From: Phaeosaccion multiseriatum
Taxonomy: Eukaryota > Protista > Ochrophyta, other classes
Direction: 5' to 3'
Assembly (NCBI GenBank): GCA_965112735.1
Contig: OZ218962.1
Coordinates: 558,001 to 622,000 of the forward strand
Length of the DNA: 64,000 nucleotides
A program made the position numbers and the translations under genes. The notes under the pieces were generated by a model. It was given only the letters and a program-made list of their open reading frames with translations. It was not told the DNA's origin and did no database searches. Numbering within the stretch: the first letter of the stretch is position 1; each line of letters opens with the position of its first letter. Positions 8,973-43,509 of this stretch are shown in pieces.

Positions 8973-10325
8973 ATGGTAACACGGGTGGAGGGAACTGAGC
9001 GGAGGGTGTGGGAATTCAACCCAACAACCCTCGCCTCAACGCCAAGCACCGGGATGCAGGGGAACCCGAGTAGCGTGAGTGGGCACCAGCGACCGACTCC
9101 CATGGAAGCAAGCAGTGCCGATGAGCTTCGGAAGTCCTCGGGCAGGCCACTGCCCTGCGCCTCCACAGACTTGAAAAGAGGCTCGGCGCAGCCTCAATGT
9201 TCGACTCTGACCGATCACGTGGGCATCGGAAGCCCTTTGGAAACGTCTGAGAGCGTTGGAACCAGCCTTAGCGCAGCCGTATGCAACCGTAGTGATAGTG
9301 GCAGCGACGAAAGAGGCGCGTTCCGGCCCGTGGATAGAATTGGCGGAGCTTTGCGAATGCCAGAGTCGTTCCTCGACATCACGCCTCGGAAGCGCCAACA
9401 GGGGCGATATTCTCCTGATGTGTGGAGCGTGCCGGAGCAAACTGGCCTGAGGAAGAAGCAGAAGACGACCTCGACGAATACGCCGATCGACCTTGACGGG
9501 GGCGGGGGGCGGAGGGAAGGGCAGGCGATGGGCTTCGCTGAGGTGCGTGCCGATAGCGCCACCACAGCTGCCGCTTCCTGGCAGCCACCTCTCTCGACGG
9601 ACTTCGCAGCACCAGAGGGGGCCAGCAGCGGCAGCGGGGCGTTATCCGAAACCATAGAGGGCGCCCACATTCAGCACAGTGTCTGCTCAGCCCGAAGCGC
9701 ACTAGTGCCCGATGTGGTGGCTGGAAGGGCCGACAGCATCTGCGACACTGAAGGTTGCAAAGAAGTACCTTTGAGCCCAGTGGCGCGAGATGCACCGAGT
9801 GGTGCCGCCCCCTTCGCATCATTGGGAGGTCTTCTTCGTTCTCCGGGGACCGATGGCCGATGTCAGCAGCAGCGGCAGCACTACCACCACCAGCAGCAGC
9901 GGCAGCACTACCAGCACCACCAGCAGCAGCAGCTGCAGTCGCATCAGGGAGGTGCTTGGATGTCTCAGAGCTTCGCTACTCCGATTGACAGAGAAGTGGA
10001 CAAGCCTGAAGGCCTACGTAATGAAGCGTGGACTGCGGAGGAGGAGGAGGAGTACGCGGGTGCTGTCGTCTGCCACTTCAGTTGGGGCTCCTTTCCCCGA
10101 GTTGAAGACAATTTCCCGGGTATCATGCGGGTCTGGAATGGGGAGGGTCACAGCTCCTCCTCCAACTCTCACTGCCCCCCGACAGCGGAGCGCGACAAGG
10201 CGGAGGGAGAGCTCCGGGAGTTGGAGGCGAGGTTCAGAGGAGGGTTGCCATCCGCTGACTTGGAGACTGGTCCCTTCACATCATGGGGTGTGTCGCCTCA
10301 TCCTCCTCGAGTCAAGGGCCGGCCT

Positions 10326-21741: not shown

Positions 21742-22580
21742 GCTGGCTCGCCGAGAGACGAAAGAAAGCCTGTACCAGGGCTGGCAGCAGGAGGCTCTCA
21801 GGGACGGTATTCACGCTGCACCGCCGCCTTCGCGCTCCACCTCCTCTGGCAGCTTCCCCCGGGGGAGGGGCTTGGTGCCAACAAACTTGTACTCACACTA
21901 CGATCTGTAGGGCGCCCTTGTGGCTCACAGCACCCTCAACAACACGGAGTACGGAGCGCTTGTAGGCTTAATGAAGAGCGCAACCCGCACTCTCATGATA
22001 ATGACACGCTGCTTTTCTGTATTATCGATGCGCGAGAGCAACGTCACGTCCCTAACCTAACTTCTACATTCCTCTCCCTCCTCCTGCTTCATGTACTACC
22101 CACGGCCGCTTTCTCTTGCTGGGAGTACCGCTGCATCCCGCCCTGCCGATGCCTGCACATCTAAGCCACTCTCACATCAAACGGGTTGTCCCCACACCAT
22201 GCTATCCTCCGTACCCTTTTGCTACACCAACTACCACCGCTGCAGTGGAGAGGGCTGCTGCTCACCCCGTCGGCTGCGTTGAGTGCCTTCCTTCGATGCT
22301 CTTGCCTCTCCTGCCCCTCTTTAGCCGCACAGTGCCATCCCACCTTCCCCCGTCGTGCCGTGCTGCTATCCATCGCTGGCCTTGTTCTCATTCCGCCACC
22401 CTCTCCACACTTCCGTCTGTCTGTGCCCCTGCTTGCCTGTCCGTGGCGGTGCTCCAACTAATCTATTCCATCCGACGCTTGTATCCACAGCCAGTCCCAC
22501 TGGCGAGTGTGCACTCCAACCCCCCCCCCCCCCACATCCCCCTCCTCGCTCGCTTCGAGGCCGTGACCTCTCTCCCCTTT

Positions 22581-28389: not shown

Positions 28390-30071
28390 TCAATGCGTGT
28401 CTTGCTTCGCCCACCTGGAATCGTCGTCGGCTCCGCGCATGCCTGCAGCCACTTCCAGCACGTTGTCGGAAGACACACCCCTCTCCTGCGGCGGTAGGCC
28501 CCTCTCCTTGCCGAAGGTCGAGTCGCACGTCCGCATTATATCCGCAGGGCTTTGGGAGTCAAAGCACCGCTTGTCTGCCATCAGAAGACGATCACGGACC
28601 TCTGGCAGGACACCAAGCTCTCGAGCAGCAGTCAGAGCCTTGCCCACAGACGCCCCTGTGCAGAGAAGGTCGTGCATCGCCCCTCCATGGTTTTCGTATG
28701 CTGCTACAAGGAGGGGAGTTCTTCCGATGGCATCCTTGATGTCCACCTCAGCCCCGGCGCCGAGCAGGATGTGCAGGACATGCCCATGTCCGGCTTCAGC
28801 AGCGTAGTGCAGAGCAGTACTGCCGTTGTTGTTATGTCGATCAACGTCTGCCCCTGCGGATACGAGCGCACGCAGCACCTCACCGTACCCACTATCCGCT
28901 GCCACCATGAGAGCAGTATCCCCCTCCACCTCATGTCGATCCACGTCTGCCCCTGCCGATAGGAGCTCACGCAGCACCTCAGCGTGTCCGTTACTCGCTG
29001 CCACTATGAGAGCAGTATTCCCCTTTGGGTCATGTCGATCCACGTCTGCCCCTGCTGAGATGAGCTCACGTATTACTCCACCGTGTCCCTGCCCCGCGGC
29101 CACCATGGGAGGTGTCATTCCGTGATCATCAGCTGCATACACCTCGGCACCAGCTGCGAGTAGCCGCCTCGCTATCTCTGCACGCCCAAGGTTGCTGGCC
29201 ACAAGAAGTGGCGAAGTTCCGTCGTTGCTCAGATGATTCACATCTGCGTTGCTGGCAAGAAGCAACTCCACCACCTCCTCTTGACCACTTGACGCCAATA
29301 GCAGTGGTGTACCTCCGTCGTTGGTGGCTCGATTCACATTGGCGCCCCCCGCGATTAAAGTTCTGACGACTTCTGTGTGCCCACAGAGTGAAGCTACACC
29401 CAAGGCCGTCCACTTGTCAACTGCTTGATCTAAATCAGCACCGGCCTCCATCAGTATCTGCACGACTTTCAGATGGCCTCCATCAGTATCTGCACGACTT
29501 TCAGATGGCCACGTTTGCAAGCCCCTATCAATGGCGTTAAAACAGCAGAAGTCATCGCTTTGTGGTTTGGAGATGCCCCTTCCCCCAACAGAAGCTCCAC
29601 AACGTCTGCTCTACCCTCCATCGCCGCTACAGTCATTGGGGTGTGCCCGTCAGCACAAATCGCGGCGTCGAGGCAAGCCTTCCTTCCCCCCTCTTTGGCG
29701 ACAAGGGCGCTGATGGCTCGCTTGACGTCCTTGATAGTCTTCCTCCCGCTGATGGCGTCGCTGAGGCGCGTGGCCTTGTGTCGCCCGAGGGAGGAGAGAG
29801 CGAGGGAGGGCGAAAAGGGCGGAAAACAAGAGGGGTGGTGAGTCACTGCTCTTGGGAGGCGACGCGCTTGTAGCAGAGACCGTTGCCCTCCCGCGAAGAT
29901 CAAGGGGAGACGAAGGGAGGTCGGCAGAGTGAGAAGTTCGGACGCAAGTCACGGCGATGGGAAGGGGGGGGTGAGAAATATAACATTTCCACCGAGGCAA
30001 GGCAACAGCGTCGGACCAATTCGGCCCCGTCGGCGGCGGCTTACCTCTCTGCTGAAGGTTGGGCTCTGCAT
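28390..30071 (-). pseudogene. Ankyrin-repeat gene copy 3, frameshifted by a 32-bp tandem duplication
   Basis: Exon 1 30071-30045 (MQSPTFSRE|GTAAG), exon 2 29774-28390. GGCCTCCATCAGTATCTGCACGACTTTCAGAT is repeated at 29443 and 29475. Confidence 0.85.
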
Positions 30072-31488
30072 GATGGAGGCACCAGCCGCCCCGAGGCCGG
30101 GCGGGGGATGATCCACGAGCCGCCCTGTGGGGGGATAAGTGTAAAAAAGAGGAACGCTCTCCGCGCTATAGAGAGCAGCAGGGAAAGAGGCAGCCGTTGT
30201 CCCGTATCTCGTCTTGAGGCAGGTTTATTGAGAAAATGAAAGTGTGTCTGTCTATCCCAGCCGGCGTACCATCTGCTATCCGCCAGCGTCAGCCGGCTTT
30301 GATTTGTTGCGAGTGCAGTAGTTGGTGTCGATAGCACGTCAGGGGTCGACACTACGGCATGTTACTGGATACGAGATCACCCAGCACCTCAGCGTAGCAG
30401 GGCTAGCAGTAGGAAGTCCTCAGAGACGGCTAAACACAAGGGGAAGGAGAGAAGGGGATCGGTTAACACTAAACTTATACTCACACTCCGATCTGTGGCG
30501 TCGTCGTGGCTCCAGCATCCTCAACAACACGGATTAAGATTAATTATACGGAGCGCTTGTAGCCTCAATGCAGAGCGCAACCCACACTCTCATGATAATG
30601 ACGCTCTGCTTTTCTTTTTTTTTCCATTTTTGCCCCCCTCCTCGAGTCCCTAACCTTACTACCTTTTACGTGTGCGTGCGCGTGCGCCTCAGAACAATCG
30701 AGCTGCACCCCCCTCCTTTGGATCCGCTCCGCCCTACTTCTCTCATCTTACTCCGAGCTAATAAGCTCCAATATACACCTCCCCCCCTCTCCCTCCTCCC
30801 TCCTCCCTCCTCCCTCCTCCCTCCTGGAGGATGCCTCACGGCCCTCCACTGCTAGACTCCGTTCCGAGCGGCCCGCGCCCTAAATGGAGCACCGCCTTCT
30901 TCTCACAGCTCGTGACGCTGGCTGCTCTCCCATCACGACGCTCACGCCCCTCAATCCGCTTGCTCATGACGTTTCGTCCTCGCTACCCGTGCTTCTGCCC
31001 TCGCACCTCTCAGACACAGCCCTCTGCTTCAGCGCATTTCCTCACCCACGCCCTCCCACGTCTCGCTCTCCATGCCTCCGGGCCTCTCCAGCGGTGGCAC
31101 CCCACTGTAGAGGTTCCCTCCCCCCCCCCCCTATTGATGCTCTTCCTCCCCCTCCTCCCCTGTAAAGCTGCTACCGCCGATCCCAAGCGAAAACTCGCTC
31201 CCTGTCCCTGCCCCTGTCGCCGCATACCGCTCTTCATGGCCTGATATGACGCATCCTGCCCCTGCCCATGTTGTTCGTGCTGCTGGTGCTCGTGTTGATG
31301 TAGTTGCTGCTGTTGTTGTTGGTGTAGTCGTTGCTGATGCTGCTGCTGCCTCCCTTGCTACTGGCTGCTGATGCTGCTGCATCCCTGGCTGGGGCACCCC
31401 CCCATACCCTCCTGCCACCGGAAGTAACCCTCCCCCCCCACACCCCCCTCCTCACTCGCTTCGAGGCCGTGTGATCTCTCTCCCCTTT

Positions 31489-33037
31489 TCAACGCGTGTC
31501 TTGCTTCGCCCACCTGGAATCGTCGTCGGCTCCACGCATGCCTGCAGCCACTTCCAGCACGTTGTCGGAAGACACGCCCCTCTCCTGCGGCGGTAGGCCC
31601 CTCTCCTTGCCGAAGGTCACGTCGCACGTCCGCATCATATCCGCAGGGCTTTGGGAGTCGAAGTATCGCTTGTCTGCCATCAGAAGACGATCACGGACCT
31701 CTTGCAGGACACCAAGCTCTCGAGCAGCAGTCAGAGCCTTGCCCACAGACGCCCCTGCGCAGAGAAGCGCGTGCATCGCCCCTCTACGATTGTGGTATGC
31801 TGCGAAGAGGAGTGGTGTTCTTCCACTGCCATCCTCGCTATCCACCGCAGCCCCGGCCTCTAGCAGGATGTGCAGGAGATGCCCATGTCCGGCCCTAGCA
31901 GCGCAGTGCAGAGCAGTAAGGCCGTGGTTGTCATGTCGATCCACGTCTGCCTCTGCTGAGATGAGCTCACGCAGCAACTCAGCGTGTACACCATTCGCTG
32001 CCCCCATGAGAGCAGTAACCCCCTTCACGTCATGTCGATCCACGTCTGCCCCTGCTGAGATGAGCTCACGTAATACCTCACCGTGTCCCTCCCGCGCGGC
32101 CGCCATGAGAGGTGTCCTTCCGTCATCATCAGCTGCATCCACCTCGGCACCTGCTGCGAGTAGCCGCCTCGCTATCTCTGCATGACCTATACCGCTAGCC
32201 ACAAGAAGTGGCGAAGTTCTGACGCTGGTCAGGGGGTTTACATCTGCGTTGCTGGCAAGAAGCAACTTCACCACCTCCTCTTGACCATTTGACGCCGCGA
32301 ACAGAGGTGTAGCTCCGTCGTTGGTGGCCTTGTTCACATTCGCATTGGTCGCGAGCAGCAGTCTCACCACCTCCTCATGACCGTTCAGTGACGCCGCAAA
32401 CAGAGGTGTTATTCCCTCGTTGGTACAGGTGGCTCGGTTCACATTGGCGCCCCCCGCGATTAAAGCTCTGACGACTTCTGTGTGCCCATTGTAACTACCC
32501 ACACTCAAGGCCGGCCCATTTGCAACTGCCCCTTCCCCCAATAGAAGCTCCACAACGTCTGCTCTACCCCCCAACGCCGCTACAGTCATTGGGGTGTGCC
32601 CGTCAGCACAAATCGCGGCCTCGAGGCAAGCCTTCCTTCCCCCTTCTTGGGCGACAAGGGCGCTGATGGCTCGCTTGACGTCCTTGATAGTCTTCCTCCC
32701 GAGGATGGCATCGTTGAGGAGCGTGGCCTTGTGTCGGCCGAGGGGGGAGAGAGCGAGGGGGGGCGAAAAAGGCGGAAAACAAGAGGGGTGGTGAGTGTTC
32801 TTGGGAGGCGACCCGCTTGCAGCAGAGACCTTCGCCCTCCCGCGAAGATCAAGGGGAGACGAAGGGAGGATGGTAGAGTGAGAAGTTCAAAAGCAAGTCA
32901 TGGCGAGCGATGGGAAGGGGGGAGAACATTCACCGAGGGAAGGCAACGGCGTTCAGCGTCGGACCAATTCGGCCCCGGAACAGAAGGCATGGCCATACAA
33001 AGGGGCTTACCTCTCTGCTGAAGGTTGGGCTCTGCAT
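31489..33037 (-). CDS. Ankyrin-repeat protein copy 4 (open frame; in-frame deletion of about one N-terminal repeat)
   Basis: Exon 1 33037-33011 (MQSPTFSRE), exon 2 32727-31489 (413 codons, no stops). The transposon sits ~390 bp upstream of the ATG. Confidence 0.85.
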
Positions 33038-33613
33038 GATGGAGGCACCAGCCGCCCCGAGGCCGGGCGGGGGATGATCCACGAGCCGCCCTGTGGGGGG
33101 AGACGCGTAAAAAAGAGGAACGCTCTCCGCGCTATAGAGAGCAGCAGGGAAAGAGGCAGCCGTTGTCCCGTATCTCGTCTTGAGGCAGGTTTATTGAGAA
33201 AATGAATGTGTGTCTGTCTATCCCAGCCGGCGTACCATCTGCTATCCGCCAGCGTCAGCCGGCTTTGATTTGTTGCCAGTGCAGTAGTTGGTGTCGATAG
33301 CACGTCAGGGGTCGACACTACGGCATGTTACTGGATACGAGGTCACCCAGCACCTCAGCGTAGCAGGGCTAGCAGTAGGAAGTCCTCAGAGACGGCTAAA
33401 CACAAGCGGAAGGAGAGAAGGGGATCGGGGCGCACTTTTATACCGTCGACCGCCGGCCCAAAAAAGCAAAAAAGGAGAAAAAAAAGAAATTAGAAATTTT
33501 CCCCGCCTGCGGCGCCACCCCTCTCCCCTCTCCTTCTCCCCCCCCACAGTAGAGGCAAGTGAAGAAGACCAATGTGTTGTATTTACATCACTATGTACAC
33601 AGAAAGGTATGAG

Positions 33614-33900
33614 TCACCCTGAAGGGCCCTGCTTAGCCTGCTGTAACCTTTCCCTTTCCCTTTGCCGCGCTGCCCTTTTCTGGAGCTTTGCCCTCTCCCT
33701 CCCCTCCGCGCCTGCCTCTGTTCTTCTCCTTTTCTCGGCCTCCCTCTTCTTCCGTAGCTTTGTCTCGCGGGTTCTCTCACCTCCCCCGAGAGCGACACCA
33801 CCCTCTGCAGTAGCAGAGTCTGCAGGTGCTACAGCTGCTCCTGCCCCCGATCCTCCCGCTGCAGGCCACAGTGCTGCGGCTGCTGGTGCCGGCGGTGGTC

Positions 33901-33947
<47 letters not shown>

Positions 33948-36900
33948 CCTTCCCCTCCTCGTCCTCCTGCTTCCACCCCTCCTCCTCCAGCAGCAGCAGC
34001 TCCTCCTCCTCCTCCTCCTCCTCCTCCTCCTCCTCCTCCTCCTCCTCCTCCTCCTCCTCCTCCTCCGCCTCCTCCGCCTCCTCCTCCTCCGCCTCCAGCA
34101 GCGGCAGACTCCATCCCGGAAAGCGGGAGGGGGGTGTAGCCCATGCTGCCACTCGCTGCTGTACCCTCCGCAGTAGCTCCGCCAACATACTCCTCGCTAA
34201 AGTGGTCTCCACCCTCCTCCCCCGCAACTGGAGCCACAGCTGAAGCAGGGTTCTCTGCTCGCTCTTGCCCCTCGATGGCGTCGTGGTCCTCTTGTGGTGC
34301 CGCGAGAGTCTGTGCCCTGGGCAAAAACTGCCGCACCCACGCCTTGTCCACAGGTCCCGCAGCGGCTGCAGATGGTCCCACTTCCCTCCGAAGGGGCCGC
34401 TGAACAGCCTCGAAGAAGTGGCTGCTCCTGAGCTCGTTGTAGGCGAGTTCTGAGGGGAAGACAGACTGTAAGTAAGCTTCTGCAGTGGATGGCATAAGAA
34501 ACACTCCCATACGAGCGGCAAGGGCGGCCAAAGAGCCGCCCACATCTGCCTTGAAGCGACCCCCCACTTCGGAAATCGATGCGCGCATCAAGGTCGCCAA
34601 TTCCTCTTTCGTAAGCTTCTGAGTTCCTCGAAGCCGCCCCCCATGTCTCCCAAGGCGAGCTGCCAGAAACTCACCTCCCCTGGATGTGCCCGCCGCCACC
34701 TCCTGCACTTGACCAGCAGCACTTCCCGTCGTGACAAAAGACTCCACCCCAGGCGAGATCGGCAGCTGCGCCGGTGATGAAGGGGTGGTAGTCGCTACTG
34801 CGACCTCTGAGCTCTCCAACTCGCATGCCTCCCTTTGCGCCTCCCACGCGTAGTGCATGCCTTGTTGAAGCACAAGGGGTGCAGAACGATCAAGTACTGT
34901 GTACCCCTCCTGCATCCCCTTTGGAGCTTGGGGTCCCAGGCGGCCAAGCGAGGCGGCCACTTGCTCAAGCAGCTCGAGGTCGTAGTGGAAGACATCAGAG
35001 GGGAATCTGTCGAGCTTGCGGAGAGCATTCCCGCAGTAGCGAAAGTCAAACTCGTTGACTATGGCGTCCACCAACTCCGCGCTTGCGCTCTTCGACAGAG
35101 CAGACAGCACAAGCCTCAAGTGAAGGTGGTACCCCTCCAGAGCAGAGCTCTGGCGCAAGCAGCGGAAAATCATCAGGCCAGTCTTCGTCGTCCGTAGGTA
35201 CACATACATGTCCACTCCCGGCCTGTCTGAAAGCCTCCCGGCCATGATGTGGCTCATGGCAGTCTTGAAAATGGCGGCGTGCTTACTGTTGAAGAAGGGC
35301 AGGCCAGTTGAGGGCTCCTTCACGTCTTTGAAGAACGTGTAGACCATGGTCAGCCGTTGCGCCAAGACCTATGTGCATTACAAAGAAGGCGGAAGAACGA
35401 GGCCAAATTGAGTCAAGGTAGCCTCACTCAACTGGACGTGTAAGTGAGCAGGTCCAGCACTCCAACAAGCACTGCGAGTCGACCCGCGCTACATACCTTG
35501 GGAGAGGGGATGGTATAGCGGCAGTGCTTCCTCAAGAACTTTCTCCGAATGCGCTTGATCTGTGCCTCAGTGAGCCCTCGTCTGAGCAGGTGCTTCTCTA
35601 TCCTCTCCATTTCACCGGCCATCATGACAAACACCGCATCGCTCAAGGCAATAGCGAAGAATCGGTACACGCGCGAGTCCTTGGAGTGGGCCATGAGAAA
35701 AAATCTGCCAACCAAGGAGGCGGCAAAACGAATCAGATCAATAGAGAGCAAGTCAGTGAGCTGTGTGCTGCTGTTTTTATTTCCCTCCGCCCCCCTTCAG
35801 TGCCATCTCGCTGCTCACCTTGCCATCCAGTGATAGATGTCGTACTTTACTCGCACGTCCTTCCAGGCGTCCCCTGCCCCCTCACCGCCACTGCCCTCGT
35901 TCTCTTTCTCAGAAGCAGCGTCAGCGTGCTGGGCAGGGCAGCGGTAACCCTTCCTCTTACTGATCAGTATCGACGCCTCCCCACCGCTTCCCACCTTTCT
36001 TGTGCGTGAGCCCCAGCCCCTCAGCTGTCTTGTACACAGTCGCTCGCGCCGTCTTCGTGAGACCCATTGGCAGAAGCAGGGGCTCTTCCCATTCAGGAGT
36101 TCTTGCAAACTTGTCGACAAAGACCAACGTTACGTCAGAGTAAGAATCACTCATCGGCTCCTCGGTCGCTCCCTCGCCTTCTTGCTCCAAAATGTCGGCA
36201 TGCCCCCCCTCCCCGCCCCCCCCCCTCCTGAGCGGCTCGCCCCCCCCCCCTCGCTCTTCTCCTTCTTCCTCCTCGTCGTTGTCTTCCCCCTCGTCCGGGT
36301 CTTCGCACACACGCCGGGCCTCAGCAGCTTGTTCCCGAGTCTGCTCCGTATCCCCCCATTCATCTCCAACCGCACCTTCTCCCCCCTCTGCTCTCGCGTC
36401 GCTTATCTCTTTCTGTGCTCCACCTCCTTGGCGCTCTCCAGCTTCGATCTGCTCCGCGGAATCATCGTGCTGTCCCTCCGCAGGCACTTTCTCTCCACTC
36501 GCTGCTGTACACCCTTGCTTCGTCCAGATCGTGTGCTGCAGTAGCCAGCTTGCATAGGCGTCATTCGCGGCGTAACAAGCCTGATCCTTGAGAAGTGGCC
36601 AGCGGCGCCAGTCAGACAACGCACCATTCCCAAGCCTGGACACATGACCGCGAGTCTCTCCCCCAATGCTCTTGTCCAGACGCTTCTTCGTAACTAGAGC
36701 AACCATGTCATCGAGTTTGTGGCTCCCCTGCCCCTGCTTGAGCTGGAGAGAGCTGCGCGCTTCGACAACTATGTCAAGGGCGCCTTTTACATCCACATCA
36801 AACTCCTTCTTCAAGACCGTAACATCCCCCTTGACGTTTGCAGCACCCTTCAGCAAAGACAAGGGCAAGGAGTAAGGGGAAAGAAGCAAATGGGGTTGAT

Positions 36901-39900
36901 CCGTCAAGGCCAAGTGGAAATATAAGGGCCAAGAAAGGCAGAAGGCAAAGTCTCAGCCCCTCTCCACTACACCAGCAGCAGAGCAGCAACGCAGTGGAGG
37001 ACCAGAGCAATAGAGCAGCAAAGCGACAGAGAAGCGGAACAACATACAAGTCGAGCAGCAGAGCAGCGAAAAAGCGAGCAAAAGACAGCAGACAAGCAGA
37101 GCAGCACAGGGCAGCAAACACCCATTCTCCCCTGCAAAAGCTTACCTTCACAATGTCCTCCCGGCTCAGAATCTCGCTGTCGAGCAAGCTGGGCACGCCT
37201 CCCAACTTGGTGAGGGAGAACAGGACGCAGAGCCCCTCGCTCGAGCACAGCTGGAGCACGCTTGTCTTGCCAGGGGACACACCCCTCTGCAGAGGAGCGT
37301 ATGCCTCACGATCAAAACCAAGGAAGAGCTGCCGGCCCTCGACTAACACGCGCTTTGCATCGTCAAGCAAAGCGTGGACTGCCTCGTGGACCTTCTCCTC
37401 AGTGTCCACAAACATGGTTTTGCCCCCCCCTGCCTCAAAGTTGATGACTTCAAGAGCATCGGTGGCAGCAGCGTCAGCGTCCTCGAAGGGGAGGCGCTGC
37501 CTCAGCAAGCGAGCATCCCGCATGTTGTCAATAGTGGCCACCTCAACCTTCGGCCGACCCTCTGCCGCCTTGCGAAACGCCTCAAGAGCTCGGGTGCATG
37601 CTGGGTCATTGTAGCTGCCCGAGTCGACGTTCACGCTAAGAATTGGAGCATTCATCTCTGCAGAGAAGATGGTAAGTCGGATGTTGGCGAACCGCACACC
37701 CTCAAACTCGAGGGACTTGAACACCTTGAAAGAGTGATCCAGCTGAACATCGGCAAAGCACACGGCAATGGAGGGCGGGGAAGAGTGGAAAATGGGGTGA
37801 GGGCACGCAAGAGTGAAGGCCTCAGCAATGGTACACATCAGCAGGCAGCATCCTCTGACTCTAGCTACGAGACTGATGAGCCCTTCTTGCTCCTGACCTG
37901 CAGCATGCGCCCCCAGATCGTCTGTTGCCTGAAGAGCAGCTGCCACTCCTTTCCACGCGCACACTTTTGAAGTAAAAACCTGCGCAATGCTCCAAAGCCT
38001 GGGACATCGATGCCCACACTATCAGCAGTTATCGACTGTTGCTGCGGTTGTTGTTGTTGTTGCTGCTGCTGCTGCTGCTGCCCCGTACTGCTGCTGCTGC
38101 TGTTGCTGCTACCGACGCCTGCTGCTGCTGCCCCCCGCTGGTGCTGCCCCTGCCCCGTGCTGCTGCTGCTGCCGCGCATCCAAGCATCGAGTGTGCTCGA
38201 CGCTGCCCCGCTTCCCTGCGACACGCCATTGCTTTTGTGTTTCTGCTTCGGCCGCTTGGCCTCACCACGCCGCTTGAGTCGACCCTCTGGAGAATAGAAT
38301 GCGGCAGACCCTAGATACTGTAGCTGCATTAGGCTCAGGGAATGCGACTCCAGTTCCTTAAACAGTTTCTCTGTGTCACCGATGCTGCCAGTTGATGTAC
38401 CGTTTCGCACGAGAAGCAGGGCCGCTGAGGTTGTAAGGGCCGTGTTGCCTGGTCCTACCTCAACGGGCAGCTCTGCAGTCACCCACTGGAAGCGTAAGTT
38501 CTCCTTGTACGCTGTGGTCACGCGTGGGTCGTAGGAGTAGAAGGAGGTCGAGTACTCGCTAATGGCTTTCTTCTGAGCGGCAAGCTGGACGGGTGGGGAC
38601 AAGGAAGGAGGGCGAAGTGAGGAAAGGACAAGGGAAGAAGAGAGGCGAGGCGTCTTCATCCAAAGCCGCAGAGAGTAGCGCAAATGAGACACAACCGAAG
38701 CACACGAACCTGCTCTTGTGACGTTTCCTTCTTCTTCTCCGCCTCCTTGTACTCAGCTTTCATCCGTTTCTTCTCCTCCAATCGCACTGCACACAGATGC
38801 CTTGTCCCCACCATGACAAAGTTGTTCTCCAGGCTGGTGACATGCACAGCCCGCTGCGCTGCCGTCCATCCTTTAGCGTGTACACACTCTGTCGAGGCAT
38901 GCCATGCGCAAAAAGGCTGCTGATGGTCCTCTCCAAGGTTGTGGAAGATGTGGGGGGCCCAGACAAACACGTCACGTTGGGCGTACCCTCCCACTTGAGA
39001 CTGGCGGCTTGCCGTCGGGGCCCTGAAGTAGGGAGATCCCCAAGTAGACAACCCTTTCTCTGGATCCTTTGCCGCCTGGAGTGCTACCTTGATGAACTCA
39101 GTCTGCGCTGGTGGTCTATTCTTCGTCCCAAACCCTCCCCTACCACAACCGCCCCCCTCCTCGCCCGTATTACCATCATCCTCGTCCTCATCCTCGTCGT
39201 TCTCACCCCTGTTAGCACAACAAAAGATGTAGAAAGGGGGCGAGAACAACAGGGGCAAGAAAGTGTGTCAAGGTAGATGTAGAAAGGGGGCGAGAACAAC
39301 AGGGGCAAGAAAGTGTGTCAAGGTATGTACAGAAAGGGCGGCGAAGAGGCGATAATTGAGAACGTACCGCTTAGACGTGCGACCAAGGGGCGGCGAAGAA
39401 AACCCTACGAAGTGGTCACCACTTGCACCATCTACCCTGTCTGCGCTCGAAGACATGTCACAGCCCTTCTTCTTCCTCTCCTCCATCTCCTTCTTTCGCT
39501 TCTCTTCCTGCTCCGCTGGGAGCAGGAAATCCTCATCAATTCCTTTTATAGCTGCACTAATCAACCGCTTCTTCTCGCTTATATCCTTCGAGGGCCGGCC
39601 TCGTCCTCCTCCAGTTTTGTAAGCATCTTCTAAAGTCGCCTTCTGGTTGAGCAAGTCCTGCCTTGCTGCCTGCAATTGTTTCCGCCTCTCCTCTTGTGCT
39701 GCGGCGATTGTTGCAAGCTCAGCCTCCACTCTCGCCTGAGTGCCAGTTTTCGAAGCGGTCGCTGGTTGTGCCGCCGCAGCGGCTGCATCTGCCAGAGCAC
39801 CGGCTTGCGTCCAAGTCTCGTCGTCCCAATCACTGGCACTGTCATTGTCGTCGTGCGCTCGCTCCTGCGGCCTTTCCACTGATATCCGAAGAGCCCTGTG

Positions 39901-39927
39901 CACCAGAAATCTCTTCAGGACTGTCAC
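33614..39927 (-). CDS. Multi-exon DDE transposase with embedded DEDDy 3'-5' exonuclease and R3H-like domain (~1780 aa; one frameshift)
   Basis: Exons ~39927-39368, 39208-38710, 38584-37898, 37742-37146, 36847-35819, 35704-35497 and 35368-33614. All introns are GT..AG and phase-consistent except for one extra A at ~35997. Motifs in order: FVWAPH..C..H..C...GW..R.V, LDHSFK, TIDN, GFDRE/GDV/YAANDA, DIYH, CLRQSSALEGYH. The start codon is uncertain. Confidence 0.8.
39225..39324. repeat. 50-bp exact tandem duplication in transposase intron 1
   Basis: AGATGTAGAAAGGGGGCGAGAACAACAGGGGCAAGAAAGTGTGTCAAGGT occurs twice. Confidence 0.9.
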
Positions 39928-41863
39928 AAAGGTGGTGCTGTTCCATCCTTTTGTGCTGCCCCGCTACAGCTTCTGCATTCTTCTCCATTTGCTGCTGCTA
40001 GTGGTGTCATGGTTTGAAATGTTTGATATGTACCTCTCTTTGCTTGACTGCTGCTGCTACTACCAGCCCTGCCACCTTCCTGCCATGAGAAATCCTTCAC
40101 TAAGCCATTACTACTGCTGGAATGTAGCAGTTGTGGTTATTTAAGCAGCGTTGACCTCCTTAGAGGAGGGGGAAGGAGGGGGGGGAGCAGAAAAATATAG
40201 GAAAAAAGTCGCTCCACGGACCAAAAAAAAAGTAGTTTTCGAGCAGAGCGAGTTTACGAGTCGATCGTATCGAAAACGTATTTTCGGGAAACGGGGAGGA
40301 CTGACAGTTACAGCGTCATAGTCATGATATGGTTGAAGGCAAGGGTACGCCGCGTGACGCAAGGGGCCTAGCGGCCCGTCTGACACGTCAGACGCCCACC
40401 CCACCGGGGTATAGCAAGAATCTAGCATTCACTACTGTAAAAGAGGAGGCGACGCGAGGACGGCGTCGCAAGAGTTGTAGCAAGTGCCGAAGAGCTCAGC
40501 GCGGTGAGAAGGACAGCGAAGGGGCGGAGCAGCCCAGCAGTCAACCGCGCGAAGGAGACGGCAGCGACAGCAAAGTTTCCCCACCCGCCCGGCCCGGGGG
40601 GACGAGTGGGATTATCGGGAATCCAACGGGGTGGATGGGAGTAAGGGCGAGGCAGACGCGTCTGCCTGCCCTGCTTTGGCACCCCCTGGAAATCGCATTT
40701 ACCCCCCCTTACACAATATAAACAATTACAAGTATTAGCAGTTAGCCTGACCGAGCGAGAGAGCGTTCGAGGGGAAGGCATGGGTAGTACTAGGTGTCAG
40801 GACGGAGTGGACTGAAAATCGCTCCAGACCAAAAAAATCGATCCACGGACAGGTCGACACTACAGTGTATAAAAGTGCGCCTCTCCCGGGATCGGCTAAC
40901 ACTAAACTTATACTCACACTCCGATCTGTGGCGTCGTCGTGGCTCCAGCATCCTCAACAACACGGATTACTACGGAGCGCTTGTAGCCGCAATGCAGAGC
41001 GCAACCCACACTCTCATGATAATGACGCTCTGCTTTTCTGTGTTATCCATTGTACCCGCCGTCCTCAAACACACTCCCTAACCTTACTACCTTTTACGTG
41101 TGCGTGCGCGTGCGCCTCAGAACAATCGAGCTGCACCCCCCTCCTTTGGATCCGCTCCGCCCTACTTCTCTCATCTTACTCCGAGCTCATAAGCTCCAAT
41201 GTACACCTCCCCCCCTCTCCGTCCGCCTTCCTCCCTCCTCCCTCCTCAGTGTGCCTCACGGCGCTGCACTGCTAGACTCCGTTCCGATGGCAGCCACCGC
41301 GCCCTGAAAAGAGCACGCACCGCCTTCTTCTCACAGCTCGCGACGCTGGGTGCTCTCCCGCCACCACACTCACGCCCCTCAATCCGCTTGCTCATGACGT
41401 TTCGTCCTCGCTACACGTGCTTCTGCCCTCGCACCTCTCAGATACAGCCCTCTGCTTCAGCGCATTTCCTCGGCCACGCCCTCCCACGTCTCGCTCTGCA
41501 TGCCTCCGGGCCTCTCCAGCAGTGGCACCCCACTTTAGAGGCTCCCTCCCCCCCCCCCCTATTGATCCTCTGCAAAGCTGCTGCCGCCCCTCCCAAGCGA
41601 GAACTCGCACCCTGTCCCTGCCCCTGTCGCCGCTATACCGCTCTTCATGGCATGATTCGACGCCTTCTGCCCCTGCCCATGTTGTTCGTGCTGCTGCTGT
41701 TGTTTGTTGGTGTAGTTGTTGCTGATGCTGCTGCTGCCTCCCTTGCTACTGCTGCGGCTGCTGCTGCATCCCTGGCTGGGGCACCGCCCCATACCCTCCT
41801 GGCACAACAAGTAACCCTCCCCCCCTCCTCGCTCGCTTCGAGGCCATGATTGCTCTCCCATTT

Positions 41864-43509
41864 TCAATGCGTGTCTTGCTTCGCCCACCTGGAAGCGTCA
41901 TCGGCTCCGCGCATGCCTGCGGCCACTTCCAGCATGGTCTCGGAAGACACGCCCCTCTCCTGCGGCGGTAGGCCCCTCTCCTTGCCGAAGGTCAAGTCGC
42001 ACGTCCGCATAATGTCCGCAGGGCTTTGCGAGTCGAAGTACCGCTTGTCTGCCATCAGAAGACGATCACGGACCTCTTGCAGGACGTCACGCTCTCGAGC
42101 AGCAGTCAGAGCCTTGCCCACAGACGCCCCTGCGCAGAGAAGCTCGTACATCGCCCCTCCATGATTCTCGTATGCTGCGAAGAGGAGGGGAGTTCTTCCG
42201 ATGTCATCCTCGCTGTCCACCTCAGCCCGCACCCCGAGCAGGAGGTGCAGGGCGTGCCCATGTCCGCCCCTCGCGGCGTAGTGCAGAGCAGTAAGGCCGA
42301 GGTTGTCACGTCCATCCACGTCTGCCGCTGCCGATACGAGCTGACGCAGAACCTCACCGTGTCCCTTATCCGCTGCCACCATGAGAGCAGTACCCCCCTC
42401 CGCGTCATGTCGGTCCACGTCTGCCCCTGCTGAGATGAGCACACGTAATACCTCAGCGTGTCCACAGTGCGCTGCCGACAGGAGAGGTGTTATTCCCATA
42501 GCACTCACAGGATCAACTTCGGCACCAGCTGCGAGTAGTCGCCTCGCTATCTCTGCATTCCCTTGGTTGCTGGCCAAAAGAAGTGGTGAAGCTCCGTCGT
42601 TTCTCAGTTGGTTCACATCCGCGTTGCTGGCAAGAAGCAACTTCGCCACCTCCTCATGACCGTACTTCGACGCCAATAGCAGTGGTGTACTTCCGTCGTC
42701 GGTGGCCAAGTTCACATTCGCATTGGCCGCAAGAAGGAGCCTCACAACCCCCTCATAATTGGCCTGTGAAGCGAAGATCAGAGGTGTAGCTCCGTCGTTC
42801 CTCGCTCGATTCACATTGGCGCCCCCCGCGATCAAAGCCCTGACGACTTCTGTGTGCCCATAGGATGTAGCTGCAACCATGGCCGTCCCTGCGCCAAAAG
42901 GTTGATCCAAATCCGCACCGGCCTCGATCAGTATCTGCACGACGTTCAGATGGCCACATACGCAAGCCCCTATCAATGGTGTGCAATCGTCAGGAGTCAT
43001 CATCACTTTGTGGTTTGGAGATGCCCCTTCCCCCAATAGCAGCCCCACAACGTCTGCTCTACCCCCCAACGCCGCTACAGTCATTGGGTTGTACCCGTCA
43101 GCACATATCGCGGCGTCAAGGCAAGCCTTCCTTCCCCCCTCTTTAGCGACAAGGGCGCTCATGGCCAGTTTGACGTCCTTGATAGTCTTCCTCCCGAGGA
43201 TGGCGTCGTGGAGGCGCGTGGCCTTGTGTCGGCCGAGGGAGGAGAGAGCGAGGGGGGGCAAAAAGGGTGGAAAACAAGAGGGGTGGTGAGTCAATGCTCT
43301 TAATAGAGACCTTTGCCCTCCAGCGAAGATCAAGGGGAGACGAAGGGAGGTCGGCAACGCAAGTCACGGCGATGGGAAGGGGGGTGTGAGAAATATAACA
43401 TTTCCACCAAGGGAAGGCAACGCCGTTCAGCGTCGGACCACTTCGGCCCCGGAACAGAAGGCATGGCCATAAAGGAGCTTACCTCTCTGCTGAAGGTTGG
43501 GCTCTGCAT
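41864..43509 (-). CDS. Ankyrin-repeat protein copy 5 (intact, ~461 aa)
   Basis: Exon 1 43509-43483 (MQSPTFSRE|GTAAG), exon 2 43222-41864 (453 codons). Confidence 0.88.

Follow-up and report, generated by a model that had tools for sequence, protein, structure and literature searches.

Does a transposable element of the ochrophyte Phaeosaccion multiseriatum encode a transposase with a complete 3'-5' exonuclease and an R3H-like domain lodged inside its DDE catalytic core, and, if so, is such an element of a kind already known? A first-pass annotation proposed this for part of a stretch of 64,000 nucleotides (GCA_965112735.1, contig OZ218962.1, positions 558,001 to 622,000 of the forward strand; this whole stretch is referred to as the window), and regarded the architecture as uncharacterised. 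We find that both domains do lie where they were placed, but that a superfamily of transposons with the same exonuclease insertion, Dada, had already been defined by Kojima and Jurka (2013, PLoS One 8:e68260; PMC3706591), an outcome that the annotation itself had named as refuting its proposal. The element is very probably a Dada member, of a lineage in which a WRN-like DEDDy exonuclease followed by R3H occupies a loop of the RNase H fold, which is of the IS256/hAT type, between the second catalytic aspartate (D2) and DxxH. As the layout with an exonuclease in the core was published in 2013, we rate the element as a lineage-level variant of something known and not a new element class.

The window contains a tandem array of minus-strand ankyrin-repeat genes at 21883–45000, with units near 21.9, 23.7, 26.5, 29.3, 32.4, 42.8, and 44.5 kb and spacers that are 83–93% identical between units. 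The transposon interrupts the spacer of one of these units, and an empty paralogous site is therefore present in the same window. BLAST of the flanks against the window matches the left flank (32519–33428) to paralogous positions 29566–30462 (90.7%) and the right flank (40888–41899) to positions 30455–31524 (85.8%), and in the uninterrupted paralog the two alignments have exactly 8 bp in common, 30455–30462. These 8 bp are thus the target-site duplication (TSD), and the insert spans 33429–40887, a total of 7,459 bp with its gene on the minus strand; the coordinates originally assigned, 33614–39927, cover only the open reading frames (ORFs). The element is mobile, having inserted with duplication of 8 bp of its target, and its ends are as follows.

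33421–33428: left copy of the TSD, 8 bp, GGGATCGG; the empty site at 30455–30462 holds one copy
33429–33443: inverted-repeat arm at the gene-3' end, GGCGCACTTTTATAC on the plus strand, terminal; 15 of 15 nt complementary to 40867–40881
40867–40881: inverted-repeat arm at the gene-5' end, sub-terminal, 6 nt inside the end
40882–40887: six extra nt at the gene-5' terminus, reading GGGAGA in the sense of the gene
40888–40895: right copy of the TSD, GGGATCGG, a perfect 8-bp match to the left copy

The empty site, the perfect 8-bp TSD, and the perfect 15-nt inverted repeat together bear out the proposal of an element bounded by terminal inverted repeats (TIRs) and a TSD. The motif of the gene-5' inverted-repeat arm, GGGRGAGGCGCNNTTTT, occurs once in the window against an expectation of 0, and there are no further copies of the transposon within the window.

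Ends of the same type are present in a second organism. Positions 9909–14695 of contig JACLAC010013698.1 (GCA_014466255.1; locus L002) hold an apparently intact, intronless element of 4,787 bp that encodes a relative of the window protein, P0040. It is flanked by an 8-bp TSD, TATTAATC, unrelated in sequence to that of the window element, and its ends, GGGGGAGGCGCCGTTTT...AAAAACGCCGCC, are near-identical to those in the window, GGGAGAGGCGCACTTTT...AAAAGTGCGCC, with the same asymmetry and a 6-nt gene-5' extension in both. A third gene-5' end of this type, represented by the 5' end only, precedes a relative at another locus (L119), and the extension is kept as GGGGGA in both L002 and L119. A scan of metagenomes with the 17-nt 5'-end motif returned about 120 loci, of which a single one, L119, encodes a relative, the others being chance matches.

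The element also has close kin in the host genome. Many read-contigs are 95–100% identical to it, internal-deletion joints (40220 to 40830, and 40230 to 40827) are present in read-contigs, and summed read depth is 10–50x higher over the gene-5' 2.5 kb, 38300–40900; the family is therefore multi-copy, with deletion derivatives, and the pattern suggests that internally deleted derivatives resembling miniature inverted-repeat transposable elements, and retaining the gene-5' end, are abundant. A further read-contig joint, 39224 to 39275, represents another family copy that lacks a 50-bp duplication found in intron 1. At 40180 a read-contig has a loose end that runs on into the terminal repeat.

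It might be supposed that such a transposase has been domesticated here and that its gene is now an immobile part of the host genome, given that the ORF is long and conserved, and that related proteins elsewhere are found among ordinary genes, those next to the L002 element being ordinary eukaryotic ones (CFAP126 and a GAF-domain gene). We consider this scarcely credible, in view of the perfect TSD and empty paralogous site, of end repeats that are conserved across hosts and also surround the L002 gene, which has its own TSD, of the reads, in which variants in multiple copies and deletion derivatives are present, and of a frame break in the window copy.

From 33.6 to 40.0 kb, every long piece of ORF is on the minus strand. 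With junctions set by GT-AG sites, phase, and alignment to relatives, they form a gene of eight coding segments with six GT-AG introns of 114–298 nt and one 1-nt frame break, rather than the seven phase-consistent exons first described; the coding total of about 1,789 codons (5,367 nt, with the count starting at ORF position 39963) agrees with the protein of about 1780 residues that had been proposed. The parts of the gene are listed in its own order.

39963–39368, minus strand: segment 1; N-terminal coiled coil (ARVEAEL..., beginning at 39735) with a GRGRP motif; corresponds in alignment to the N-termini of P0019, P0032, P0040, and P0014
39367–39209, minus strand: intron 1, GT..AG, 159 nt
39208–38710, minus strand: segment 2; acidic stretch and Cys/His N-domain (FVWAPH 38967–38950, CAWH 38913–38899, LCAVR 38799–38782)
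38584–37898, minus strand: segment 3; FYSYDPRV motif, poly-Q/S low complexity, and WQLLFRQQ leading to the first catalytic aspartate (D1); relatives have YRSYD.. and SWRQQNV
37742–37146, minus strand: segment 4; D1 (LDHSFK) and D2 (TIDN), followed by the N-terminal half of the exonuclease, including Exo I (GFDRE)
36847–35996, minus strand: segment 5; Exo II (NVKGD) and Exo III (YAANDA), followed by the acidic linker and the N-terminal half of the R3H-like module
About 35995, minus strand: reading frame broken by 1 nt within the R3H module (..LGLTHKK / VGSGGEASILISK..)
35994–35819, minus strand: segment 6; C-terminal half of the R3H-like module, followed by DxxH (DIYH)
35704–35497, minus strand: segment 7; FFLMAHSK...SDAVF...RKHCRYTIPSPK, opening the helical insertion domain; junctions by alignment to relatives and P0002
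35368–33617, minus strand: segment 8; LSDRPGV, the catalytic glutamate (E; SALEGYH), helical C-domain, a long Gly/Ala/Pro low-complexity region, and a basic tail

Every motif named in the first-pass annotation was found at minus-strand coordinates: LDHSFK at 37742–37725, TIDN at 37535–37524, GFDRE at 37319–37305, NVKGD at 36838–36824, YAANDA at 36574–36557, the R3H-like module at 36079–35956, DIYH at 35841–35830, and SALEGYH at 35146–35126. Two alternative arrangements are rejected on the junctions in relatives: an intron of 48 nt separating segment 6 from segment 7 by the junction HWMA-R-FFLMAHSK, and reading segment 7 through to its stop by the junction RYTIPSPK / VLAQRL. Intron 1 contains a perfect 50-bp tandem duplication (39225–39324) that is private to the window copy. 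Long CTG/CAG- and CCT-type trinucleotide runs at 33850–34110 and 38030–38180 lie within coding segments, where they give poly-Gly/Ala/Pro and poly-Gln/Ser tracts, and like runs occur in the host spacer at 41660–41800.

The order of domains along the protein is a Cys/His N-domain, D1, D2, DEDDy exonuclease, acidic linker, R3H, DxxH, and E, just as was originally proposed, including the insertion of exonuclease and R3H between D2 and DxxH, and intronless relatives have the same layout. The exonuclease is recognised in segment 5 by Pfam (DNA_pol_A_exo1, PF01612; 3.9e-8), and all of the DEDDy residues (GFDRE, NVKGD, YAANDA) are present and sited between TIDN and DIYH. Its closest solved structure is the WRN exonuclease (2.7e-16, template-modelling score 0.8, 30% identity), followed by Nibbler and EXD2, in keeping with its assignment to the WRN/Nibbler (Mut-7)/EXD2 clade. 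The R3H module of the window copy aligns to the domain, although it reads R-ATV-Y and not R-x3-H and is split by the frame break, and there is no Pfam match to R3H (PF01424) in the window pieces. The Cys/His N-domain reads CAWH..C..CAVR, where relatives have CxxC or CxxH followed by CxxC, as in P0019 (CWRC..CSIC) and P0014 (CPKC..CKTC). The resemblance of this domain to DUF6729 holds for two relatives, P0026 and P0014, which match DUF6729, while in the window segment 2 gives a weak match, with E 0.058 and a score of 13.4 bits where the Pfam cut-off is 27. Clusters combining DNA_pol_A_exo1 and DUF6729 are present in fungi in the ESM Atlas; our literature search found no paper containing 'DUF6729', and none linking R3H to a DNA transposase.

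Relatives of the window protein are few. A full HMMER (phmmer) scan of 1.84 billion representatives with the exon carrying D1, D2, and Exo I gave only 31 hits, long proteins among them, and a word-indexed search added thirteen relatives; a profile search of a 5.8-billion set with our clade alignment (A1) recovered close clade members only. Segment 4 matches P0003 (1.3e-46) and also the long relatives P0007, P0014, P0019, and P0032, and segment 8 matches P0001 (1.1e-53) and P0002 (2.5e-10). Relatives of the same architecture with continuous ORFs come from other organisms, distant ones among them, are 1,070–1,537 aa in length, and include P0019 (1,537 aa), P0032, P0040 (1,508 aa, from an NCBI genome assembly), and P0043, which is truncated N-terminally. 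The order in these four is a coiled coil, CxxC/H...CxxC, a YRSYD block, D1, D2, exonuclease, a Pro/acidic linker, R3H, DxxH, a helical domain, and E. The exonuclease and R3H domain lie at residues 573–755 and 858–893 of P0019, and both are recognised by Pfam in P0043 (exonuclease 2.3e-9; R3H 9.5e-7, 29.2 bits against a cut-off of 26.8). Among the 20 clade members scanned with Pfam, R3H is found in nine and the exonuclease in eight, and the catalytic residues D1, D2, DxxH, and E are conserved across the clade in alignment A1. One relative, P0014 (a continuous ORF of 1,269 aa on a Logan contig of 4,413 bp), has R3H but no exonuclease between D2 and DxxH, and the two are thus separable modules at one loop.

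It was in P0014, lacking the exonuclease, that the core could be modelled. AlphaFold prediction of residues 160–1010 with a 32-row alignment gave a predicted template-modelling score of 0.66 and a predicted local distance difference test score (pLDDT) above 90 over the core, and the placement of D1, D2, and E was read from strand and helix positions together with fold matches. D1 lies on strand 309–315 (strand 1), D2 lies just after strand 381–384 (strand 4), DxxH is at 579–582, and E738 is on helix 735–751. Matches of the model by VIA-align are to ISCth4 of the IS256 family (Z 13.1, 236 residues aligned, range 280–779), to the hAT transposase Hermes (Z 9.2, range 280–783), to retroviral integrase cores (Z about 7, within 280–795), and to the R3H domain of Smubp-2 (Z 8.4, root-mean-square deviation 2.2, range 477–545). 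The model therefore agrees with the earlier expectation that D1, D2, and E are predicted to come together in a single RNase H-like fold, with the accessory module (here R3H) looping out between D2 and DxxH. A prediction for P0043 is confident in the exonuclease, R3H, and helical domains, and has pLDDT below 50 in the D1 and E regions, so that the core is not resolved. Matches to the P0014 model in AFDB include fish and Perkinsus proteins, basidiomycete proteins named '3'-5' exonuclease', and DUF6729 proteins (E 1e-7 to 3e-16), and its structural neighbours there also include scallop and sea-cucumber proteins.

Also matching this model, over its C-terminal half (residues 573–815), are AFDB clusters named 'MULE transposase domain-containing protein', which raises the question of whether this is a Mutator-like (MuDR/MULE) element that carries an exonuclease. 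Its 8-bp TSDs and TIRs are nearer to the habits of MULEs, and we count on the same side the D-x-[ST]-x-K at D1 and the S..E..H at E, which we take to resemble MULE motifs. A Mutator-like origin nonetheless seems to us highly improbable. Pfam gives no MULE, Mutator, or SWIM match at E ≤ 0.01 in 20 clade members and 10 relatives, and no match to PF10551 or PF20700 at E ≤ 10 in the window pieces; the detailed motifs fit a Dada element of Laccaria, Dada-1_LB; and the best match among solved structures is the IS256-family ISCth4, IS256 being equally related to Dada (PMC3706591).

Dada transposases combine DDE and DxxH, are distantly similar to those of MuDR, hAT, P, Kolobok, and IS256, and have an N-terminal CCCC finger and a C-terminal CCHC finger; the elements have 6–7 bp TSDs and sub-terminal inverted repeats but no TIRs, and all of the members with definable ends lie in U6, U1, or tRNA genes (PMC3706591). 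An exonuclease insertion was reported in the Dada elements of Laccaria and Ectocarpus, with a proposed role in end processing, and the ends and TSDs of these exonuclease-bearing families were undefined in 2013 (PMC3706591). Reading Dataset S1 by eye, we find the window protein to be collinear with Dada-1_LB, and also with the first record of the dataset, block by block from D1 to E. The Dada-1_LB blocks are GIDHSHKI, IIFTDNLADKP, the exonuclease LVVGLDTEW..YAALDAWAS, LKDIFHVFH, RHCKHVVPPPEQL, SGLPLF, ISDPPGIPLYY, and YRCWRGTNFTEG, and their counterparts in the window are LDHSFKV, TIDNMRDA, GFDREA..YAANDAYAS, KYDIYHWM, RKHCRYTIPSPK, TGLPFF, LSDRPGVDMYVY, and FRCLRQSSALEG. Both Dada zinc-finger signatures, the N-terminal CxxC...CxxC and the C-terminal CCHC, are kept in clade members, the latter as CPKCG..H..C in P0034, P0035, and P0036.

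A number of observations weigh against placing the element in Dada. The TSD is 8 bp in both the window element and L002, against 6–7 bp in Dada, and the 15-nt inverted repeat reaches the terminus on the gene-3' side but stops 6 nt short of it on the gene-5' side, whereas Dada elements are without TIRs. There is no small-RNA gene at the target in either the window or L002: an Rfam scan of 29000–42500 found no family at its gathering score and three matches up to E = 1, to isrG at chance level, and a search for tRNAs found none in the window and none in L002. The CCHC finger is absent from the C-terminal exon of the window protein, and is absent too in P0019 and P0040; its presence in P0034–P0036 indicates that it was lost within the clade. 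The homology to Dada would follow from collinear motifs read by eye taken together with structure matches, and the activity of the exonuclease, its substrate, and its part in transposition are predictions. As to the gene model, intron joints were looked for in the contigs of four sequencing runs from one sample and none was found, the contigs behaving like genomic DNA.

These departures could instead point to an undescribed superfamily in its own right, a sister of Dada, MuDR, hAT, P, and Kolobok within the C/DxxH group of transposases and one that gained a DEDDy exonuclease independently at the same loop. The 8-bp TSD, the inverted-repeat ends, and the targets other than RNA genes all depart from the diagnosis of Dada, the DUF6729 match of the window piece falls below threshold, and the 31 phmmer hits are few for a search of that size. 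We nevertheless think this quite unlikely, because the collinearity with Dada-1_LB extends past the catalytic residues to RHC..xPxP, GLP(L/F)F, (L/I)SDxPG(V/I), and RCxR....E, because clade members have both of the Dada zinc-finger signatures and two of the relatives match DUF6729, and because the structural neighbours of the P0014 model in AFDB come from taxa where Dada was described. We note also that apparent 8-bp TSDs occur in Dada-U1 and Dada-tIA_PMar, where the authors read them as 6 bp (PMC3706591). Since that paper defined no ends for the exonuclease-bearing families, the 8-bp TSD, the end structure, and the target outside RNA genes may simply be traits of the exonuclease-bearing part of Dada, and membership of Dada is the reading that we adopt.

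The copy of this Dada-type element in the window does not have the intact reading frame that had been supposed. On either side of about 35995, the frame-1 piece (..LLLPMGLTKTARATVYKTAEGLGLTHKK) aligns to one half of R3H in relatives and the frame-2 piece (VGSGGEASILISK..) to the other. A GT..AG solution to this change of frame was sought and none fits, a 35-nt intron that would bridge it being in the wrong phase, and a read-derived contig covering 35891–36038 without gaps has the same sequence at the break. There is no in-frame ATG upstream of the conserved N-terminal coiled coil, the ATGs at 39988 and 39946 being in another frame, and a zinc-ligand position is altered, CAVR having an arginine as the last ligand where relatives have CxxC. 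Because of the frame break in R3H, the missing in-frame start codon, and the changed zinc-ligand position, this copy is in all likelihood defective, and probably non-autonomous.

From the resemblance of the protein to IS256, hAT, and Dada transposases, the N-terminal Cys/His domain of an intact family member would bind the end repeats, and the DDE core would cut and join strands. The predicted exonuclease, tethered by the acidic linker beside the active site and supplied with substrate by R3H, would remove nucleotides from 3' ends or from 3' tails that are unpaired, either at the excised ends or at donor or target gaps, a role like that proposed for Dada (PMC3706591). We speculate from the conserved asymmetry of the ends that the two may be processed differently. 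A bolder reading, which we regard as unlikely, is that Dada elements with the exonuclease-R3H cassette form a lineage with a mechanism of its own, characterised by 8-bp TSDs, conserved asymmetric ends with a fixed 6-nt extension on one side, and lack of RNA-gene targeting. The nuclease would then either be needed to resect one particular 3' end, in an asymmetric IS256-like pathway, or serve against silencing by trimming small RNAs of the host in the manner of Nibbler/Mut-7.

The window element thus provides an exonuclease-bearing Dada-type transposon with verified boundaries, together with a second example in another organism, and the ends of the exonuclease-bearing lineage can now be defined, with an 8-bp TSD, a 5' end of GGGRGA-GGCGC..TTTT, and a 3' end of AAAA..GCGCC. 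The single-strand-binding domain R3H travels with the exonuclease in this lineage, and the loop between D2 and DxxH is a recognisable hot spot for accessory modules.

The closest known systems are Dada-1_LB and Dada-2_LB of Laccaria bicolor and Dada-1_ES of Ectocarpus. Shared with these exonuclease-bearing Dada elements are a DDE and DxxH transposase of more than 1,000 aa in an element of 4.7–11 kb with introns, a DEDDy exonuclease between D2 and DxxH, an N-terminal CxxC..CxxC region, with its last ligand position altered in the window copy, blocks from D1 to E that read by eye as collinear, an inverted repeat that is sub-terminal at one end, and, in some clade members, a C-terminal CCHC. The window element differs in having R3H and an acidic linker behind the exonuclease, where Dada-1_LB has an unrelated segment, and departs from Dada in general in its target, which is not a tRNA or small nuclear RNA gene, in its 8-bp TSD, in an inverted repeat of 15 nt that is terminal at one end, and in the lack of a CCHC finger in the window copy.

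More distant systems resemble the element in part. ISCth4 (PDB 6xgx, 6xg8) and Hermes (PDB 4d1q) have in common with it an RNase H-like DDE core in which an all-helical domain is inserted ahead of the catalytic glutamate, but the sequence identity is about 10%, neither of them has an exonuclease or R3H inserted, and the domains at their two termini are different. KolobokD is likewise a DNA transposon of the C/DxxH group with its own 3'-5' exonuclease, proposed to act on transposition intermediates, but this is a DEDDh/DnaQ enzyme (TREX/ERI1-like) in the Kolobok superfamily, with TTAA TSDs of 4 bp, and is not described as inserted in the D2–DxxH loop (PMC9587614). A precedent for the pairing of R3H with a DEDD nuclease is found in PARN. 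PARN, WRN, Nibbler, EXD2, and Smubp-2 are all host enzymes of repair or RNA processing, whereas in the element described here the exonuclease and R3H form a cassette in a loop of the transposase.

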